A DNA stretch of 64,000 bases, from the NCBI GenBank assembly GCA_965240325.2, contig OZ251222.1, positions 2,418,001-2,482,000 on the forward strand, read 5' to 3'. The notes under the pieces were generated by a model. It worked only from the letters and a program-made list of their open reading frames with translations, was not told the DNA's origin and searched no databases. Source of the stretch: Rebecca billardiae RCC1528 (lineage: Eukaryota > Protista > Haptophyta). This document shows, one piece after another, positions 3,361 to 45,230 of the stretch. A program made the translations under genes and the position numbers. Each line of letters starts with the position of its first letter. The stretch's first letter is position 1.

Positions 3361-3845
3361 AGGCCCCCGCCGCGGTGTCGTCACCGCAAGTGCCACACGC
3401 GGGCACGTCAATGCTCGCGCGGTTCGTACCGCGCGCGCAGCCGCCCTGCAGGCGGAGGACATTCGAGGTTGCGTAACGGATGTCCTTCTGGTAGTCACCG
3501 AACTCGTACACCACGCCGTGCGTGGGCATCTGGTTCATCAGCGCGCTTTCACTCGGCTGCTCGATGCAGAGCGTGCTGCACGCGAGCATCATTGCCCGCG
3601 CGTTCGTCGCGACACCCGCGGCGCTGCGACCGGCTGGATGGGCCATGCCCGGCGGTCCGTGGTTTCACACGTTTGAGCTCATGATGTTTATTCCGCCTTA
3701 CCAGTTCCCCGGTCACGCAGGGGCTTATCACAGTGTCCCTGCGGACGTCGTCAGCAGCGTCGTCCGTGCGGACGAGCGGGCGGTGCGGGAGTCGTCCCAC
3801 ACAGGTGCAGAAGGAAACGGCACCAGGTCCAGTGATAGGTCGTTA

Positions 3846-4024
3846 GACCAATTCTATGATTTAAAGACACAGGCACGAGGGCGCAGCTCTCCTGATTCGT
3901 CTGTCGAAGTACTGAATGGAGTTAATGGAGGATGTCGCTGGAGCGCGTTGGCCGCGGGTGAGGGAGTCGTCGTAACCGATGCTGATCACACGGTCACTGA
4001 GGTAGTAGGCGCCCGGGGATGCCG
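3846..4024 (-). repeat. Dispersed repeat family Y, copy 1
   Basis: Near-identical to 32676-32851 (3 bp indel, 1 substitution seen). Minus strand ends TTAAATCATAGAATTGGTC. Confidence 0.95.
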
Positions 4025-4053
4025 ACCAATAGCGCCGGGGGAAAACGGACATA

Positions 4054-4847
4054 TAGTCCCTCACAAGTTTAAGCCTCCCGACATTGTTCGCCATATCAGC
4101 GCAGCAAAGCAGCGGCGCGCCACCATACCAGGGGCGTACTTGGCCCACTCCACTGCCGTGCACATGAGGTGCGCCCGGACCCGATTGCTCGAGTCCTCGC
4201 AAATAGGCGTGGCTGTGCATCCTGGGTTGACGTTTGGTACCCGGCGGCCGGCGAGCTCGACTGGCGGCGAGCAGACCTGCCTGCGTGCCGCCGGCTGTCG
4301 GCAGCCTCCGTGCGCTGAGCCGCGCGCCGCGCGGTGCGTGTGCGACGTAGCTCCGCCCACGCCACGCATGCACCCTCGCGCCGCGCCGCCAGCTTGGCGC
4401 TGCCGTCAGCCAGAGCCGATCGAGTGCATGCCCGAGCCTGCTCCGAGAGCATCAATATGGGCTGCGTGTGGCTGCGCGTGCACTTTCGTCGCCTAATTTT
4501 GCCAGCGTCGAGTTGGCGCGTGGCACGCCCACCGTAGCAGCACGACTCCCGAATGCACAAAAGCCGGGGGTCAGCTGAATTAATGCAGCTCACACGACCG
4601 CGCTCCACGCCGAAAACCAGCCCGTAGCTGCCCGCCGGCTGGCTCGTGCATGCGCACCGACTGCCGGGCGCATCGACACCGTGGCGCACAGAGCGCGGGT
4701 ACCGCGGCCGGGTGGGTATGTACTGACGCGGCTGGGCCTGGTGCATGCGCGGGCGGATGGGCTCTGCCCGGGTCGGCGCGTAGCGGGCGTGCGGGCTGAG
4801 ACAAAGTCGTGCCTGCTGCAGCCGGCAACTAAATTTGTGGGTCCCTA
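4054..4847 (+). repeat. 794 bp long direct repeat, left copy
   Basis: Matches 13013-13806 with one substitution seen (A4701/G13660). Its own ends TAGTCCCTCACAAGTTTA / TAAATTTGTGGGTCCCTA are imperfect inverted repeats (13/18). Confidence 0.97.
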
Positions 4848-5325
4848 AGTGAGCAGGTAGTAGAAAAGTCGGAACGAGGGCGAGGGCGACGGCGAGCGAG
4901 GCCGGCGTCGGTCCACATGGGTCGGGGATATTCCCGCCGTGCAGCGATCCCAGCGCGTCGTCCGCCTCCGGCGAGTTGGTGGGGCACAGGAGCCCACATC
5001 TTGCGCAGAGCAGCTGAGGTTAATCGGACGCTCCCGCGCGGCGGCGGGGCCGGCAGTTGGGGCCTCCACTGGGTTGGACTTGCGCCACGCCGCTTGTCAT
5101 AGCTCGACGAGCTCAACCCGTGGCGCCGAGCTCGTGCCCAGCGCACATCCGCGAGGGCGTGCGGCCCCAGCGCACGCGGCGGCTGCGTCGATGGGGCGCT
5201 CGCCATGGACGGAACGAGTTCGAATAGAGGCCACACCGCTTCGTCAGCTGTAAGATCAACTTTGGGCGGCTCGGGACGTAACGTGCACTCATCTTCGGTC
5301 GTGGCCAAGCAGCCGGCGGCGGCTG

Positions 5326-6627
5326 ATGGGCCGCGCGCCGACCGCGCCCAAAGATCGGCGCGGGCGCAAAGGCGCCCACCGCGTCGGCTACGCTCCGAAC
5401 AGGCGGGTATCGCGGGAGTGTATTGCTCTGGATTACAACCCGAAGGCCCTGGGCCCTGCGGAGAGGTTTCACCATGCGATCGGCGCGTGCGTGCTGTGCC
5501 TCAATGAAGGCTCTCCGTTGGCCTCAGCTTTCCAGAGGGCGGCGCGGTCGGCCGAGGTCACCGAGAAGACGATGAAGAAGTGGTTCATGGACTGGCACAC
5601 GGAGGGCTGGCACATCGATGCTGACGGGAAGCCGAAGCGCGGTCCACGCCCACGCCTCAGTGCCAAGGCGCAGGCGGCGCTTACGTCCGAGCTCAGCGCC
5701 GGGCCGGCTGGTCAGAGTGTGCGGAAGGCTGCGTGCCGCGCCGTCGGTGCTGGATCGCTCGATGCGTCCGCGCTCGACGTCTCCGACGAGACGCTACGCC
5801 GCGCGGCGCGGAAGAAGATGGATTGGGAGCCGCTCAAGGTGAGGAAGCAGATCACGGCTCAGCAGGCGAAGAAGCGGGTGGCGTTCGCACGGTGGCTGCA
5901 GAGAGTCAAGGCGATGGTTGACAGGCTGTTCTTCACCGACTCGAAGTACTTCAAGTTCGACGTCACGAACCGGAGCACGGTGATGTCGTGGACGCTGCGT
6001 GACGAGCCCAAGCGCAAGCTGAACCAGGTCCAGGCAGGTGACTGCGTGATCCATGGCTACGCCGGCGCCTGCTCTCGCGGCATCACGCCGCTCTATTTTG
6101 CCACGGGCACTCACGGCCGCACGCATGAGAATGGTCGCGGCAAGCAGTGCCGTGGCGTGTGCTGGAAGGAGTACCTGAACGACGTGCTGCCTTTCCTGGA
6201 CAAGGAGGCCCAGGCGCTCTTCGGCAACTTCATCAGACAGATGATCTTCCAGCAGGACAGTGCCTCACCCCACACGGCGCTGGCTGTGCGCCAATGGCTC
6301 GACGAGCGGTTTGGCCCCGAGGGACACCTTGGCCCCAAGTCGACCGAGGGTCAGCCGGGCCGTAGCTGGCCGCCGAACAGCGCCGACTTGTCGCTCATTG
6401 AGCATGTCTGGGCGCGCGTGGAGCAGCTTCTCAACGCATGGAAGCACAAGTGGTGCACCGACAACCCGAGCAAGCAGCGGCCAACCTTCAAGGAGTTCGA
6501 GGAGGTGGTGAAGGCTAAGTTCGAGGAGGTACGGAACGACAAGAAGTTCATCCAGGCGCTGTTCAAATCCTATCGGCGTCGGCTGCAGGACTGCGTCGAG
6601 ACCAAGGGTGAGCAGCGCGTGCGCTGA
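5326..6627 (+). CDS. Tc1/IS630-superfamily DDE transposase, DD47E spacing, 433 aa, intronless
   Basis: Motifs FFTDSKYF (D1), FQQDSASPH (D2), WPPNSADLSLIEHVW (E); N-terminal HTH-like region with GPRPRL linker; C-terminal RRLQDCVETKGE typical of Tc1. Confidence 0.95.
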   Translation: MGRAPTAPKDRRGRKGAHRVGYAPNRRVSRECIALDYNPKALGPAERFHHAIGACVLCLNEGSPLASAFQRAARSAEVTEKTMKKWFMDWHTEGWHIDADGKPKRGPRPRLSAKAQAALTSELSAGPAGQSVRKAACRAVGAGSLDASALDVSDETLRRAARKKMDWEPLKVRKQITAQQAKKRVAFARWLQRVKAMVDRLFFTDSKYFKFDVTNRSTVMSWTLRDEPKRKLNQVQAGDCVIHGYAGACSRGITPLYFATGTHGRTHENGRGKQCRGVCWKEYLNDVLPFLDKEAQALFGNFIRQMIFQQDSASPHTALAVRQWLDERFGPEGHLGPKSTEGQPGRSWPPNSADLSLIEHVWARVEQLLNAWKHKWCTDNPSKQRPTFKEFEEVVKAKFEEVRNDKKFIQALFKSYRRRLQDCVETKGEQRVR

Positions 6628-6743
6628 AGAGCAGTGTCGGACAATGATGGTATAGTTTATTAGCTGCTCAGTATAGTAGATCTCGAGTCATATCATATCA
6701 GCCTATAGGCTATAGCTTACTCTACGTCTAACGTCACGTCTCA

Positions 6744-9700
6744 CGACAGCTGCGACCAGCGGCGGCTAGCTCAGCAGAGCGGCGCGACTGAGCGATGATG
6801 TGCGCGCCGGGCGGGCACGCCGACGCGTGAGCAGTGCGCCCCGGGGCCGCTCGACGCGCGCGCGCGCGCCCGGCCGCACGGCGCCTCCTCCACGCGGCCC
6901 CATGTCCCGGCTCAGAGCGAGCAGCTGACAGCAACTGGTCTTCACGATCTGCGGCGGCGGCGAGCAGCTACGACTGCTACGGGGGCCTCAGAGCGCGGCG
7001 AGGACGAGCTAGCTGGGCGAGATCGGGGTGCGGGGCACTCGGCGCGGCCCAGGCACACCGAGCCCACGTGCCAGCGGGGCGGCGCCGCGCCGCGCGAGCG
7101 CGCGCTCGCGCGCCGACTTTTGTCGGGTCAGATCAGCCTACGGCAGCTCACGGCCTCAGCCGACGGCTGCGACCAGCGGCGGCTAGCTCAGCAGAGCGGC
7201 GCGACTGAGCGATGATGCGCGCGCCGGGCGGGCACGCCGACGCGTGAGCAGTGCGCCCCGGGGCCGCTCGACGCGCACGCGCGCGCCCGGCCGCACGGCG
7301 CCTCCTCCTCGCGGCCCCATGTCCCGGCTCAGAGCGAGCAGCTGACAGCAGCTGGTCTTCACGATCTGCGGCGGCGGCGAGCAGCTACGACTGCTACGGG
7401 GGCCTCAGAGCGCGGCGAGGACGAGCTAGCTGGGCGAGATCCGGGTGCGGGGTGCTCTGCGTGGCCCAGGCACACCGAGCCCACGTGCCAGCGGGGCGGC
7501 GCGGCGCCGCGCGCGCGCGCGCGCTCGCGCCGACTTTTGTCGGGTCAGATCAGCTGACGGCAGCTCACGGCCTCAGCCGACGGCTGCGACCAGCGGCGGC
7601 TAGCTCAGCAGAGCGGCGCGACTGAGCGATGATGCGCGCGCCGGGCGGGCACGCCGACGCGTGAGCAGTGCGCCCCGGGGCCGCTCGACGCGCACGCGCG
7701 CGCCCGGCCGCACGGCGCCTCCTCCTCGCGGCCCCATGTCCCGGCTCAGAGCGAGCAGCTGACAGCAACTGGTCTTCACGATCTGCGGCGGCGGCGAGCA
7801 GCTACGACTGCTACGGGGACCTCAGAGCGCGGCGAGGACGCGCGGGCTGGGCGCGATCGGGGTGCGGGACGCTCGGCGCGGCCCAGGCGCACCGAGCCCA
7901 CGTGCCAGCGAGGTGGCGCGGCGCGCCGCGCGCGCGCGCTCGCGCGCCGACTTTTGTCGGGTCAGATCAGCTTACGGCAGCTCACGGCCTCAGCCGACGG
8001 CTGCGACCAGCGGCGGCTAGCTCAGCAGAGCGGCGCGACTGAGCGATGATGCGCGCGCCGGGCGGGCGCGCCGACACGTGAGCAGTGCGCCCGGGTGCCG
8101 CTCGACGCGCACGCGCGCGCCCGGCCGCACGGCGTCTCCTCCACGCGGCCCCATGTCCCGGCTCAGAGCGAGCAGCTGACAGCAGCTGGTCTTCACGATC
8201 TGCGGCGGCGGCGAGCAGCTACGACTGCTACGGGGGCCTCAGAGCGCGGCGAGGACGAGCTAGCTGGGCGAGATCCGGGTGCGGGGTGCTCGGCGCGGCC
8301 CAGGCGCACCGAGCCCACGTGCCAGCGAGGTGGCGCGGCGCGCCGCGCGCGCGCGCTCGCGCGCCGACTTTTGTCGGGTCAGATCAGCTTACGGCAGCTC
8401 ACGGCCTCAGCCGACGGCTGCGACCAGCGGCGGCTAGCTCAGCAGAGCGGCGCGACTGAGCGATGATGCGCGCGCCGGGCGGGCACGCCGACGCGTGAGC
8501 AGTGCGCCCCGGGGCCGCTCGACGCGCACGCGCGCGCCCGGCCGCACGGCGCCTCCTCCTCGCGGCCCCATGTCCCGGCTCAGAGCGAGCAGCTGACAGC
8601 AGCTGGTCTTCACGATCTGCGGCGGCGGCGAGCAGCTACGACTGCTACGGGGGCCTCAGAGCGCGGCGAGGACGAGCTAGCTGGGCGAGATCCGGGTGCG
8701 GGGTGCTCTGCGTGGCCCAGGCACACCGAGCCCACGTGCCAGCGGGGCGGCGCGGCGCCGCGCGCGCGCGCGCGCTCGCGCCGACTTTTGTCGGGTCAGA
8801 TCAGCTGACGGCAGCTCACGGCCTCAGCCGACGGCTGCGACCAGCGGCGGCTAGCTCAGCAGAGCGGCGCGACTGAGCGATGATGCGCGCGCCGGGCGGG
8901 CACGCCGACGCGTGAGCAGTGCGCCCCGGGGCCGCTCGACGCGCACGCGCGCGCCCGGCCGCACGGCGCCTCCTCCTCGCGGCCCCATGTCCCGGCTCAG
9001 AGCGAGCAGCTGACAGCAGCTGGTCTTCACGATCTGCGGCGGCGGCGAGCAGCTACGACTGCTACGGGGGCCTCAGAGCGCGGCGAGGACGAGCTAGCTG
9101 GGCGAGATCCGGGTGCGGGGTGCTCTGCGTGGCCCAGGCACACCGAGCCCACGTGCCAGCGGGGCGGCGCGGCGCCGCGCGCGCGCGCGCGCTCGCGCCG
9201 ACTTTTGTCGGGTCAGATCAGCTGACGGCAGCTCACGGCCTCAGCCGACGGCTGCGACCAGCGGCGGCTAGCTCAGCAGAGCGGCGCGACTGAGCGATGA
9301 TGCGCGCGCCGGGCGGGCACGCCGACGCGTGAGCAGTGCGCCCCGGGGCCGCTCGACGCGCACGCGCGCGCCCGGCCGCACGGCGCCTCCTCCTCGCGGC
9401 CCCATGTCCCGGCTCAGAGCGAGCAGCTGACAGCAACTGGTCTTCACGATCTGCGGCGGCGGCGAGCAGCTACGACTGCTACGGGGACCTCAGAGCGCGG
9501 CGAGGACGCGCGGGCTGGGCGCGATCGGGGTGCGGGACGCTCGGCGCGGCCCAGGCGCACCGAGCCCACGTGCCAGCGAGGTGGCGCGGCGCGCCGCGCG
9601 CGCGCGCTCGCGCGCCGACTTTTGTCGGGTCAGATCAGCTTACGGCAGCTCACGGCCTCAGCCGACGGCTGCGACCAGCGGCGGCTAGCTCAGCAGAGCG

Positions 9701-12700
9701 GCGCGACTGAGCGATGATGCGCGCGCCGGGCGGGCGCGCCGACACGTGAGCAGTGCGCCCGGGTGCCGCTCGACGCGCACGCGCGCGCCCGGCCGCACGG
9801 CGTCTCCTCCACGCGGCCCCATGTCCCGGCTCAGAGCGAGCAGCTGACAGCAGCTGGTCTTCACGATCTGCGGCGGCGGCGAGCAGCTACGACTGCTACG
9901 GGGGCCTCAGAGCGCGGCGAGGACGAGCTAGCTGGGCGAGATCCGGGTGCGGGGTGCTCGGCGCGGCCCAGGCGCACCGAGCCCACGTGCCAGCGAGGTG
10001 GCGCGGCGCGCCGCGCGCGCGCGCTCGCGCGCCGACTTTTGTCGGGTCAGATCAGCTTACGGCAGCTCACGGCCTCAGCCGACGGCTGCGACCAGCGGCG
10101 GCTAGCTCAGCAGAGCGGCGCGACTGAGCGATGATGCGCGCGCCGGGCGGGCACGCCGACGCGTGAGCAGTGCGCCCCGGGGCCGCTCGACGCGCACGCG
10201 CGCGCCCGGCCGCACGGCGCCTCCTCCTCGCGGCCCCATGTCCCGGCTCAGAGCGAGCAGCTGACAGCAGCTGGTCTTCACGATCTGCGGCGGCGGCGAG
10301 CAGCTACGACTGCTACGGGGGCCTCAGAGCGCGGCGAGGACGAGCTAGCTGGGCGAGATCCGGGTGCGGGGTGCTCTGCGTGGCCCAGGCACACCGAGCC
10401 CACGTGCCAGCGGGGCGGCGCGGCGCCGCGCGCGCGCGCGCGCTCGCGCCGACTTTTGTCGGGTCAGATCAGCTGACGGCAGCTCACGGCCTCAGCCGAC
10501 GGCTGCGACCAGCGGCGGCTAGCTCAGCAGAGCGGCGCGACTGAGCGATGATGCGCGCGCCGGGCGGGCACGCCGACGCGTGAGCAGTGCGCCCCGGGGC
10601 CGCTCGACGCGCACGCGCGCGCCCGGCCGCACGGCGCCTCCTCCTCGCGGCCCCATGTCCCGGCTCAGAGCGAGCAGCTGACAGCAGCTGGTCTTCACGA
10701 TCTGCGGCGGCGGCGAGCAGCTACGACTGCTACGGGGGCCTCAGAGCGCGGCGAGGACGAGCTAGCTGGGCGAGATCCGGGTGCGGGGTGCTCTGCGTGG
10801 CCCAGGCACACCGAGCCCACGTGCCAGCGGGGCGGCGCAGCGCCGCGCGCGCGCGCGCGCTCGCGCCGACTTTTGTCGGGTCAGATCAGCTGACGGCAGC
10901 TCACGGCCTCAGCCGACGGCTGCGACCAGCGGCGGCTAGCTCAGCAGAGCGGCGCGACTGAGCGATGATGCGCGCGCCGGGCGGGCACGCCGACGCGTGA
11001 GCAGTGCGCCCCGGGGCCGCTCGACGCGCACGCGCGCGCCCGGCCGCACGGCGCCTCCTCCTCGCGGCCCCATGTCCCGGCTCAGAGCGAGCAGCTGACA
11101 GCAACTGGTCTTCACGATCTGCGGCGGCGGCGAGCAGCTACGACTGCTACGGGGACCTCAGAGCGCGGCGAGGACGCGCGGGCTGGGCGCGATCGGGGTG
11201 CGGGACGCTCGGCGCGGCCCAGGCGCACCGAGCCCACGTGCCAGCGAGGTGGCGCGGCGCGCCGCGCGCGCGCGCTCGCGCGCCGACTTTTGTCGGGTCA
11301 GATCAGCTTACGGCAGCTCACGGCCTCAGCCGACGGCTGCGACCAGCGGCGGCTAGCTCAGCAGAGCGGCGCGACTGAGCGATGATGCGCGCGCCGGGCG
11401 GGCGCGCCGACACGTGAGCAGTGCGCCCGGGTGCCGCTCGACGCGCACGCGCGCGCCCGGCCGCACGGCGTCTCCTCCACGCGGCCCCATGTCCCGGCTC
11501 AGAGCGAGCAGCTGACAGCAGCTGGTCTTCACGATCTGCGGCGGCGGCGAGCAGCTACGACTGCTACGGGGGCCTCAGAGCGCGGCGAGGACGAGCTAGC
11601 TGGGCGAGATCCGGGTGCGGGGTGCTCGGCGCGGCCCAGGCGCACCGAGCCCACGTGCCAGCGAGGTGGCGCGGCGCGCCGCGCGCGCGCGCTCGCGCGC
11701 CGACTTTTGTCGGGTCAGATCAGCTTACGGCAGCTCACGGCCTCAGCCGACGGCTGCGACCAGCGGCGGCTAGCTCAGCAGAGCGGCGCGACTGAGCGAT
11801 GATGCGCGCGCCGGGCGGGCACGCCGACGCGTGAGCAGTGCGCCCCGGGGCCGCTCGACGCGCACGCGCGCGCCCGGCCGCACGGCGCCTCCTCCTCGCG
11901 GCCCCATGTCCCGGCTCAGAGCGAGCAGCTGACAGCAGCTGGTCTTCACGATCTGCGGCGGCGGCGAGCAGCTACGACTGCTACGGGGGCCTCAGAGCGC
12001 GGCGAGGACGAGCTAGCTGGGCGAGATCCGGGTGCGGGGTGCTCTGCGTGGCCCAGGCACACCGAGCCCACGTGCCAGCGGGGCGGCGCGGCGCCGCGCG
12101 CGCGCGCGCGCTCGCGCCGACTTTTGTCGGGTCAGATCAGCTGACGGCAGCTCACGGCCTCAGCCGACGGCTGCGACCAGCGGCGGCTAGCTCAGCAGAG
12201 CGGCGCGACTGAGCGATGATGCGCGCGCCGGGCGGGCACGCCGACACGTGAGCAGTGCGCCCCGGGGCCGCTCGACGCGCACGCGCGCGCCCGGCCGCAC
12301 GGCGCCTCCTCCTCGCGGCCCCATGTCCCGGCTCAGAGCGAGCAGCTGACAGCAGCTGGTCTTCACGATCTGCGGCGGCGGCGAGCAGCTACGACTGCTA
12401 CGGGGGCCTCAGAGCGCGGCGAGGACGAGCTAGCTGGGCGAGATCGGGGTGCGGGGCACTCGGCGCGGCCCAGGCACACCGAGCCCACGTGCCAGCGGGG
12501 CGGCGCCGCGCCGCGCGCGCGCGCGCTCGCGCGCCGACTTTTGTCGGGTCAGATCAGCCTACGGCAGCTCACGGCCTCAGCCGACGGCTGCGACCAGCGG
12601 CGGCTAGCTCAGCAGAGCGGCGCGACTGAGCGATGATGCGCGCGCCGGGCGGGCGCGCCGACGCGTGAGCAGTGCGCCCAGGGGCCGCTCGACGCGCACG

Positions 12701-13001
12701 CGCGCGCCCGGCCGCACGGCGCCTCCTCCACGCGGCCCCATGTCCCGGCTCAGAGCGAGCAGCTGACAGCAGCTGGTCTTCACGATCTGCGGCGGCGGCG
12801 AGCAGCTACGACTGCTACGGGGGCCTCAGAGCGCGGCGAGGACGAGCTAGCTGGGCGAGATCCGGGTGCGGGGCACTCGGCGCGGCCCAGGCACACCGAG
12901 CCCACGTGCCAGCGGGGCGGCGCCGCGCCGCGCGCGCGCGCGCTCGCGCGCCGACTTTTGTCGGGTCAGATCAGCCTACGGCAGCTCACGGCCTCAGCCG
13001 A
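6744..13001 (+). repeat. Tandem satellite, 15 x 417 bp, with a 4-monomer (1668 bp) higher-order repeat
   Basis: Equivalent positions recur exactly every 417 bp (6834, 7251 ... 12672). Variant order A B C D B B C D B B C D B A A. Confidence 0.98.
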
Positions 13002-13012
13002 GGCTGCTCACT

Positions 13013-13806
13013 TAGTCCCTCACAAGTTTAAGCCTCCCGACATTGTTCGCCATATCAGCGCAGCAAAGCAGCGGCGCGCCACCATACCAGGGGCGTACTT
13101 GGCCCACTCCACTGCCGTGCACATGAGGTGCGCCCGGACCCGATTGCTCGAGTCCTCGCAAATAGGCGTGGCTGTGCATCCTGGGTTGACGTTTGGTACC
13201 CGGCGGCCGGCGAGCTCGACTGGCGGCGAGCAGACCTGCCTGCGTGCCGCCGGCTGTCGGCAGCCTCCGTGCGCTGAGCCGCGCGCCGCGCGGTGCGTGT
13301 GCGACGTAGCTCCGCCCACGCCACGCATGCACCCTCGCGCCGCGCCGCCAGCTTGGCGCTGCCGTCAGCCAGAGCCGATCGAGTGCATGCCCGAGCCTGC
13401 TCCGAGAGCATCAATATGGGCTGCGTGTGGCTGCGCGTGCACTTTCGTCGCCTAATTTTGCCAGCGTCGAGTTGGCGCGTGGCACGCCCACCGTAGCAGC
13501 ACGACTCCCGAATGCACAAAAGCCGGGGGTCAGCTGAATTAATGCAGCTCACACGACCGCGCTCCACGCCGAAAACCAGCCCGTAGCTGCCCGCCGGCTG
13601 GCTCGTGCATGCGCACCGACTGCCGGGCGCATCGACACCGTGGCGCACAGAGCGCGGGTGCCGCGGCCGGGTGGGTATGTACTGACGCGGCTGGGCCTGG
13701 TGCATGCGCGGGCGGATGGGCTCTGCCCGGGTCGGCGCGTAGCGGGCGTGCGGGCTGAGACAAAGTCGTGCCTGCTGCAGCCGGCAACTAAATTTGTGGG
13801 TCCCTA
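13013..13806 (+). repeat. 794 bp long direct repeat, right copy
   Basis: Copy of 4054-4847 at offset 8959. Confidence 0.97.
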
Positions 13807-14397
13807 TATTAGAGGGGTCAGAGCCCCACTGTGGCGTGTGTCCCGTGTGTGGCCCAAAATCCAACTTTCTGTCGTCTTGAGATGAGGCTCTCAAACTTCG
13901 GGATGTCAATATTCGCCTGAAATGACCTGGGGTCACTCGCTGACAAGTTTTGCGAAAAAATGTCACATACTGGTCACTGGAGATATACGACCTCAATCTC
14001 GACGCGATGTCTGCAACATTAGTAGGGGAGATACACGATTACACGATCTCCAAGGTGATCTCGCTATTTGCACCAGAATCGCACCTGCTAGATCACATTT
14101 TGACAGCCTGAAATTATTGGCACAGGCGGATTCTACACCCTGATGGAATTAAGCGGTAAGCCTAAACGAACTTAAACGGACTCAAACAGTTTAATAAACT
14201 GATGAGGAGATATTTCATATATTTTGATATTTCAGGAGATTGTGTCACTCGGGAGTGTAACGGTCGGAGCTGCTCTGACCCCACGACTAAACTTGCATTA
14301 TACATCAGAATCACATGTAAGTGAGGCGATGTAGTGACATTATGACTAAGTGCCTGACTGACTCAGTACTACTAGGTCTAGTACTACGACCACCTCG

Positions 14398-32675: not shown

Positions 32676-32851
32676 GACTAATTCTATGATTTAAAGACAC
32701 AGGCACGAGGGCGCAGCTCTCCTGATTCGTCTGTCGAAGTACTGAATGGAGTTAATGGAGGATGTCGGAGCGCGTTGGCCGCGGGTGAGGGAGTCGTCGT
32801 AACCGATGCTGATCACACGGTCACTGAGGTAGTAGGCGCCCGGGGATGCCG
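32676..32851 (-). repeat. Dispersed repeat family Y, copy 2
   Basis: Near-identical to 3846-4024. Confidence 0.95.
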
Positions 32852-44384: not shown

Positions 44385-45230
44385 CCCACAGGTTTAGTCG
44401 CTGACCCGGCACAGCCGTGACGACTTTGTCTCAGCCCGCACGCCCGCTACGCGCCGAGCCGGGCAGAGCCCATCCGCCCATGCATGCACCAGGCCCAGCC
44501 GCGTAAGCGCACGCATACCCACCTGGTCGCGGCACCGCTGACCGGCGGTGCTCTGTGCGGCACGGGGTCGACGCGCCCGGCGGTCGGCGCGCATGCACGA
44601 GCCAGCCGACGGGCAGGTCTGGGATCCTTTTCGGCGTGGAGCGCCGTCGTGTGGGCTGCATGAAGTCAGCTGGCCCCCAGCTTTTGCGCATTCGGGAGTC
44701 GTGCTGCTACGGTGGGCTTGCCGCGCGCCAACTCTGCGACGCTGGCAACAATAGGCGACGACGAAACTGCGCTTGCAGCCACACGCAGCCCATTTTCATT
44801 TTGATGCCCTCGGAGCAGGCTCGGGCATGCACTCGATCGGCTCTGGCTGACAGCAGCGCCAAGCTGGCGGCACGGCGCGAGGATGTATGCGTGGCGTCGG
44901 TGGCGTGGGCAGACCGCAGAGCTACGCCGCACACGCACCGCGCGCCGCGCGGTTGCCGGTTCAGCGCCACGGGGGCTACAGACACCCGGCGGCACGCAGG
45001 CAGGTCTGCTCGCCGCCAGTCGGGCTCGCCGGCCGCCGGGTACCTAACTTCAATCAACAACGACCAAGGATGCACACCCACGCCTATTGGCGAGGACTCG
45101 AGCTATCGGGTCCGGGCACACCTCAACTGCACTCGGCGACTCGCCGCCGCACCGCAGTGAAGCAGTGTCGCCAAAATACGCCCAGGCTACAGTAGCATGG
45201 TGTCGAAAGCGAACGTGTCAGGGGCTAATA
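44385..45230 (-). repeat. Diverged solo copy of the 794 bp repeat, nested in element B
   Basis: Colinear with the reverse complement of 4054-4847 (e.g. CGACTTTGTCTCAGCCCGCACGCCCGCTACGCGCCG; GCAGGTCTGCTCGCCGCCAGTCG); ends degraded. Confidence 0.9.

Follow-up and report, generated by a model that had tools for sequence, protein, structure and literature searches.

The question raised by this locus is whether a transposase gene and the long direct repeats on either side of it form one mobile unit and, if so, on which ends this unit moves. The locus lies in a stretch of 64,000 nucleotides from the haptophyte Rebecca billardiae RCC1528 (contig OZ251222.1, in the following C1, positions 2418001-2482000), which is referred to as the window and whose first letter is position 1 for all coordinates given without a contig. 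Direct reading of the window sequence yielded a unit at 4054-13806 with the structure TA-R(790 bp)-TA-I(8165 bp)-TA-R-TA, R being the directly repeated and I the internal module. This is the R-I-R layout with TA boundaries which had been claimed in an original prediction made from the letters of the stretch, including the single site at which the two R copies differ (R position 646; A at 4701, G at 13660). G is found at this position in every other genomic R copy and in one short-read contig of run X1. Each R constitutes a whole miniature transposon of non-coding sequence, the inverted ends of which (GTCCCTCACAAGTTTA and GGGACCCACAAATTTA, 11 of 16 positions matching) are imperfect, as had been predicted, and I comprises the sole conserved gene, coding for a Tc1/mariner-type transposase, together with a satellite. 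The I ends AGTGAGCAG (4848-4856) and CTGCTCACT (13004-13012) form a perfect inverted pair of 9 bp. The host sequence reads ...GGACA-TA before the TA at 4054-4055 and TA-TTAGAGG... after the TA at 13805-13806. Based on the structures, joints and flanks that were observed, on the transposase family and on the recurrence of the layout across diverged families, we consider it probable, with considerable doubt remaining, that the unit is a composite-like Tc1/mariner transposon which is mobilised through the outer ends of both R copies. The family is very young and probably still active.

The genome (72 Mb in 41 contigs with a G + C-content of roughly 65%) was queried with R as well as the unique portion of I, and the joints were then read individually; the structures of an array at C1 2.32-2.39 Mb and of the units on contigs C7, C30 and C3 were derived from hit coordinates and from loci of 3.8-4.9 kb. 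At least 11 host-flanked units beginning and ending with R were found, the flanks of which are mutually unrelated and always read TATA/R...R/TATA (slashes mark the element borders). Seven are R-I-R monomers, namely the window copy and the copies at C1:4.10 Mb and on C35, C39, C10, C33 and C17. One unit with an assembly gap, on C3, has the form (R-I)2-R, and the forms R-(I)3-R and R-(I)4-R are present on C30 and C7, respectively. A long array of R and I modules occupies C1:2.33-2.39 Mb, and an R-TA-R dimer is located at C1:2318313-2319896. The proposal that the arms also move alone agrees with solo R copies with TATA flanks on C8 and C13. In addition, older or partial R copies with identities of 97-99% and 83-84% were detected.

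The joints between the modules are equally regular. According to whole-genome pattern counts 15 of 21 right ends of I join R and six join I, with none of them touching host DNA. Correspondingly, 16 of the 22 left ends of I that were read join R and the other six join I, each via one TA. The 20-bp palindrome CTGCTCACT-TA-AGTGAGCAG, which the original prediction had obtained by joining the inner ends of the unit through the TA, does exist, as it occurs six times in the genome, always as an I-TA-I joint. Host-flanked ends of R modules of this family (family 1) exhibited TATA at all 13 left and all 12 right ends read, which in a genome of such G + C-content is beyond chance. As the copy number of the satellite differs among genomic copies, the units vary in length; I-to-I spacings of 3999, 4832 and 11086 bp were observed. 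All 23 intact transposase open reading frames (ORFs), which are 99-100% identical, are located inside R-bounded units. The features of the window locus, along with the satellites of related families, are collected in Table 1.

Table 1. Coordinates of the unit, its flanks and related features (window positions unless a contig or locus is named).
Feature	Position	Strand	Remark
Left host flank TATA	4052-4055		inner TA 4054-4055; extra TA 4052-4053
Left R module (long terminal direct repeat), 790 bp	4056-4845	+	own imperfect inverted ends; no conserved ORF
R-to-I joint, single TA	4846-4847		same in 16/16 R-to-I joints read
Internal module I, 8165 bp	4848-13012	+	unique 1.9 kb plus satellite; 9-bp inverted ends
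Transposase gene, intact, 433 aa, Tc1/mariner-type DDE	5326-6627	+	profile, domain and model matches
Satellite, 15 x 417-bp unit, 96% matches	6744-13007	+	stops 5 bp short of I right end
I-to-R joint, single TA	13013-13014		15 identical I-to-R joints genome-wide
Right R module	13015-13804	+	equals family consensus
Right host flank TATA	13805-13808		TA 13805-13806; second TA 13807-13808
Older solo R relative	about 44420-45132	-	84% identical over R positions 103-755
Satellites of four families	window 6744-13007; C11:84131-87159; C29:737866-738718; L066:2253-2832

The transposase was assigned by the original prediction to the Tc1/IS630 type, and profile, domain and fold matches point to the same group. 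Its catalytic residues D205 (5938-5940), D311 (6256-6258) and E359 (6400-6402), with the spacing DD47E (two aspartates and a glutamate, the DDE triad), are invariant in the alignment and lie within the motifs FTDSK, QQDSA and LIEHVW. A word-based protein search with the transposase returned only the protein itself; a full HMMER search yielded 401 relatives. Among 33 aligned sequences the Pfam domain DDE_3 was recognized in 29 and HTH_Tnp_Tc3_2 in 23, the window transposase alone giving a weak DDE_3 match (expectation value, E, 0.013) and no call of the helix-turn-helix (HTH) domain. A profile of these 33 sequences matched the catalytic domain of Sleeping Beauty with 1.3e-38, Mos1 with 6e-15 and the DNA-binding domain of Tc3 with 5e-7. 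As a single-sequence AlphaFold model only reached a pLDDT (predicted local distance difference test) of 41, an alignment-based model (pLDDT 82) was used, which matches Mos1 over about 395 columns including the N-terminal helices (E 3.5e-11) and isolated catalytic domains with target-normalised TM (template modelling) scores of 0.75-0.82. Membership of the transposase in the Tc1/mariner (IS630-Tc1-mariner) superfamily is thus well supported: a homologous DDE domain, an N-terminal paired-like HTH region and inverted repeats at the outermost ends of the unit are all present, the last of them in an atypical manner for Tc1/mariner, as they come from two direct R copies. Thirteen other ORFs of the unit (at least 82 aa) were scanned without any Pfam match, and in a translated comparison between families the transposase was the sole conserved gene.

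The same layout was found in two further families of this genome. The C11 family reads TATA/R'(808 bp)-TA-transposase-satellite-TA-R'/TATA, its transposase being 37% identical to that of the window and its R' copies 99.9% identical to each other (the direct repeats measure 812 bp when the TA on each side is counted). A family on C29 and C20, with a transposase of 33% identity, reads TA/R''(782 bp)-transposase-satellite-R''/TA, with CAGGGTCyCCAACA at the R'' ends; its I lacks inverted ends and its inner joints lack the TA. A solo inverted R'' copy with five substitutions and TA flanks (C20:1679951-1680744, locus L057) lies 0.85 kb from the C20 R''-I''-R'' unit. R, R' and R'' have no internal similarity or coding signal in common, and their lengths as well as their placement relative to gene and satellite are alike. 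A satellite between the transposase gene and the downstream end is present in four diverged families, with repeat units of 417 bp (family 1), about 415 bp (C11), about 200 bp (C29/C20) and 382 bp, the last one 3' of the gene on the metagenome contig L066. No convincing mutual homology was found among these four satellites, and matches between those of family 1 and of the C11 family were limited to low-complexity, GC-rich sequence.

Outside this genome, metagenome contigs were scanned, most of which are only 1-3 kb long and thereby too short to reveal flanking repeats. Contig L064 nevertheless reads X(792 bp)-TA-I-TA-I-TA-X-TA-I, with a transposase of 34% identity, inverted ends GGGGAGG... on the module X and palindromic I ends (CACA/TGTG). 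L076 contains a tandem unit in which a TA-bounded module of 776 bp with inverted ends (TA/GTCCGCCAC...) is placed next to the transposase between 7-bp palindromic I ends. Modules of 770 and 746 bp with inverted ends of 20 and 17/18 bp lie just 3' of the gene in L147 and L148, respectively, the latter module being followed by TATA, and the contigs L065 and L146 close on themselves, as would be expected of collapsed R-I units. Across families the R-type modules keep to a narrow range of 746-808 bp, and their inverted ends match at 17-21 of 24 positions in the modules of C11, C29, L064 and L148. The R ends are related between families (e.g., TA/GT....TCA(A)AAGTTT), whereas the I ends are unrelated. 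A hidden function of the R modules was considered and found to be unsupported, as searches of Pfam, Rfam and tRNAs gave no match and R modules of different families compared in translation exhibited no coding conservation.

Regarding the target site, family 1 has TA at every outer and inner boundary, and every copy of family 1 and of the C11 family is bordered by TATA on both sides. A duplication of TA is favoured by the C29 copy, which reads CTA/../TAC, and by the dimer, which reads R-TA-R/TATA. From these flanking sequences the target duplication would most simply be TA with a preference for TATATA.

As all outer boundaries of the units are R ends, as I ends never occur there and as R is also found alone, we infer that the R ends, and not the I ends, are the functional transposon ends and the substrate of the transposase. 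The transposase would act on the R ends. If it brought together the outermost ends, the left one of the first R and the right one of the last, the whole unit would move and insert at a TA, which in the copies described here is always part of TATATA or TATA. If instead both ends of a single R were paired, R would move alone. Insertion or excision of R alone at a TA, together with recombination or unequal crossover between R copies, could then give rise to solo R, R-TA-R, (R-I)n-R and R-(I)n-R.

Several observations weigh against this reading. Within family 1 the length of the duplication fits TA or TATA. No empty site, excision footprint or polymorphism was present in the assembled contigs of two samples. 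C33 carries a private G144A in both of its R copies and C17 a C789A in both, the latter variant being also found in the solo R on C13; a variant in one R alone is seen only in the window copy. As gene conversion or unequal crossover would then be needed, these shared private variants argue against plain cut-and-paste. Moreover, R is identical across I haplotypes which differ by about nine substitutions and two indels per 1.9 kb, and solo R is in the recent burst no commoner than the composite form, though movement would be expected to be easier for a short element. Footprints, which excision of Tc1/mariner elements normally leaves, are absent from the six I-TA-I joints and from the R-TA-R joint. 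Finally, in the metagenome contig L150 (JGI metagenome 3300046777, 2896 bp; relative P0009), which closes on itself to a unit of 2769 bp, TA-flanked inverted ends of 23 bp enclose the transposase segment (2021 bp) and not the remainder of 744 bp, which has no inverted ends. L150 was dropped as support for the layout for this reason and may represent a canonical or transitional form. The direct-repeat layout is a trait of a lineage and is not shared by all relatives.

The footprint-free joints, shared variants, uniformity of R and frequency of the composite form fit a stage with a single R or homogenisation within multimers. A single-R stage is the core of a model resembling the translocatable unit or cointegrate of IS26, in which recombination between the two R copies frees an R-I circle. 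This circle would re-enter the genome in one of two ways: its single R would transpose replicatively, so that R-I-R with two newly copied R modules and a target duplication results, or the circle would be integrated specifically beside an R already in place. Both R copies would thereby be regenerated from one template, as is the case for long terminal repeats (LTRs). The private variants in both R copies of C33 and C17, the uniform R across diverged I haplotypes, a composite form at least as frequent as solo R, the presence of (R-I)n arrays and the precise single TAs at the joints are all in favour of this model, yet no circle was seen in the assembled contigs of two samples, and studied Tc1/mariner transposases cut both strands and are non-replicative. 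If a circle were integrated into a solo R by homology, this alone would also not place an end-proximal variant in both R copies, the I-TA-I joints require an additional assumption such as multimeric circles, and the shared variants are likewise accounted for by unequal crossover in multimers. We therefore regard a one-R intermediate, an idea which was also raised for the KolobokP elements discussed below (PMC9587614), as possible but rather unlikely. The same reservation applies to the wider notion of a Tc1/mariner lineage with an LTR-like life cycle at the DNA level, in which a single-R form exists and both repeats are regenerated at integration; such a cycle, doubtful as it is, would explain the variants in both R copies, the uniformity of R across I haplotypes and the clean single-TA joints.

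It is also conceivable that I is the true autonomous transposon, with its 9-bp inverted ends and a TA duplication, and that it forms I-TA-I tandems or circles. R would then be a parasitic miniature element with a preference for the palindromic I-TA-I joint as target, and the R-I-R units would be by-products mobilised through R. An R inserted into the TA of I-TA-I would produce precisely I-TA-R-TA-I, and in several families R is surrounded by palindromic I ends, which measure 9 bp in family 1 and 7 bp in L076 and read CACA/TGTG in L064. The transposase segment of L150 itself has 23-bp inverted ends, and the head-to-tail arrays of Bari1 are a precedent from the Tc1 family. Against this stand the 21 right ends of I, none of which touches host DNA, the lack of conservation of the I ends between families in which the R ends are conserved, and the C29/C20 family, in which I has no inverted ends and the inner joints have no TA. 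This explanation consequently appears improbable. Even a chance constellation or an artefact, be it the independent insertion of two miniature elements next to an ordinary Tc1 element, a duplicated segment or a doubling of R during assembly, might be suspected from the view of a single locus, but nothing beyond that view speaks for it. The same joints recur at the at least 11 loci with unrelated flanks, by which misassembly and chance double insertion are excluded; the layout is moreover found in three families with non-homologous R modules and on one foreign contig (L064), the predicted R/I branch point is where contigs from an independent run stop, and the location of all 23 transposase copies within R-bounded units speaks for the predicted compound DDE transposon and against two chance insertions of miniature inverted-repeat transposable elements. 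An accidental origin of the layout is hence refuted and was left with hardly any probability.

The long direct repeats also call for a comparison with LTR retrotransposons, which are marked by genes for reverse transcriptase and integrase, by repeat ends of the type TG..CA and by duplications of 4-6 bp. As the only conserved gene here codes for a DDE transposase, as R starts with GT and ends with CC instead of TG..CA, and as reverse transcription would not account for I-I and R-R joints, this assignment was rejected. Canonical Tc1/mariner elements (Tc1, Sleeping Beauty, Mos1) share with the composite-like transposon favoured here a homologous transposase, TA boundaries, AT-palindromic targets and miniature derivatives. 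In these elements, however, a single pair of inverted ends directly surrounds the gene, whereas here the gene is placed between direct repeats of about 790 bp which hold the ends, and the usual spacing of DD34-41 is replaced by the longer DD47E. With bacterial composite transposons and IS26 the unit has in common directly repeated mobile arms around a centre, arms that also occur alone, arrays that share arms and a plausible circular one-arm unit. In the bacterial systems, though, it is the arms that code for the transposase, with cargo between them, while the unit described here has non-coding arms and carries its transposase gene in the centre. Within the Tc1 family, precisely joined head-to-tail elements are known from Bari1 of Drosophila melanogaster, for whose arrays concatemers from a circular form have been proposed (PMC8834629), and this is a partial precedent for the I-TA-I joints. 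In contrast to the dispersed units with target duplications described here, Bari1 forms heterochromatic clusters without an R-type spacer and with a loss of 2 nt per joint. A transposase-bearing unit joined to its miniature element is also found in the pair Tan1 and Vader, which is of the Fot1/pogo type and has one miniature element on one side only. Activity of this pair, which stems from Aspergillus niger, is cited in PMC13728883.

The closest counterpart by far in layout is KolobokP, a group of composite-like DNA transposons of animals with the structure LTDR-INT-LTDR (long terminal direct repeats, LTDRs, around an internal part, INT), which was presented in 2022 as unlike any other DNA transposon (Kojima and Bao, 2022, Mob DNA 13:24, PMC9587614). 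The original prediction was unaware of any eukaryotic family described with such a layout; this did not hold, as KolobokP has exactly this architecture, and according to our literature search it is the one described eukaryotic DNA transposon family with long terminal direct repeats. Both systems have direct repeats bearing short inverted ends, solo repeats with target duplications, multimers of the types (LTDR-INT)n-LTDR and LTDR-(INT)n-LTDR, a single duplication unit where INT joins INT and a tightly constrained repeat length (450 or 660 bp in KolobokP, 746-808 bp here). KolobokP differs in encoding a Kolobok transposase in INT and in its 5'-RR..YY-3' termini and target duplications of 3-5 bp (TTAA-type), where the unit described here has a Tc1/mariner transposase and a TA target (PMC9587614). 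It furthermore possesses a His-Me finger (I-PpoI-like) homing endonuclease, on which the model for its multimers relies (PMC9587614). Unlike in KolobokP, no Pfam match to a His-Me nuclease was found among the 13 scanned non-transposase ORFs of the unit. KolobokP is known from animals, and the layout described here from a haptophyte and unidentified environmental organisms, with an internal satellite as an additional difference. The element is thus of KolobokP-type architecture but is no KolobokP. Within the literature searched, no Tc1/mariner elements with such a layout have been described, an absence which is not proof.

Some further observations concern the genomic surroundings. At window positions 3846-4024 a repeat of about 180 bp, with more than 40 genomic copies at 97-100% identity and a second copy in the window at 32676-32851, stops 31 bp short of the inserted R; this repeat probably represents a miniature element of young age. 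On the other side the terminus of another abundant repeat family (13810-14104; 40+ copies, 85-91%) starts about 5 bp after R. The unit thus went into the AT-rich edge of an element older than itself. One flank repeat on C3 breaks off at the insertion point. A search for an empty site via paralogues of the flanks revealed no uninterrupted target. The read data consisted of the assembled contigs of two samples, whose depth cannot give copy numbers. The short-read contigs are interrupted at the borders of R, as would be the case for any repeat, and loose contig ends at 4051-4053 stem from other copies of R or of the flank repeat. In run X2 (organism B) short contigs are about 95-99% identical to the left flank, R and the satellite (window 3578-4272 and 6744-7000), with two differences in 151 positions against R 4122-4272 and about 98% identity for the pieces of R and of the satellite, and the family is hence present in a close relative or another strain.

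The older solo R of the window, for which the original prediction had given an extent of 44385-45230, is real, lies on the minus strand and is divergent in its first approximately 100 bp (Table 1), so that the predicted structure was confirmed in all its elements; relatives of it with 83-84% identity are present on two further contigs. In the C3 unit (C3:3670464-3683660, locus L053) a run of at least 156 N is located just upstream of the second I. The array at C1:2329005-2390503 (27-89 kb upstream of the window; loci L017, L022, L038 and L043) has an identical 300-bp host flank, inverted in orientation, at either border; the left flanks of L017 and L022 are 100% identical, and two I copies without right ends face each other within the array. 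This symmetry is either due to a large inverted duplication with a satellite breakpoint or to an assembly artefact.

Taken as a composite-like transposon moving on its R ends, the unit represents a second, independent case of the composite-like, LTR-shaped architecture, which in this instance occurs in Tc1/mariner, the best-studied eukaryotic transposase superfamily, and in a protist. A second instance without a homing endonuclease implies that the architecture is convergent and weakens explanations that are based on this endonuclease. If an LTR-like cycle without a homing endonuclease were true, it would offer a general route from cut-and-paste to composite elements. With 23 intact, near-identical transposase copies, clean modules and every intermediate form in the genome, the family is well tractable. 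Members of the Pavlovales, the group of this alga, are commonly grown in culture, and a Tc1-type element that is active could find use as a tool for insertions in haptophytes.

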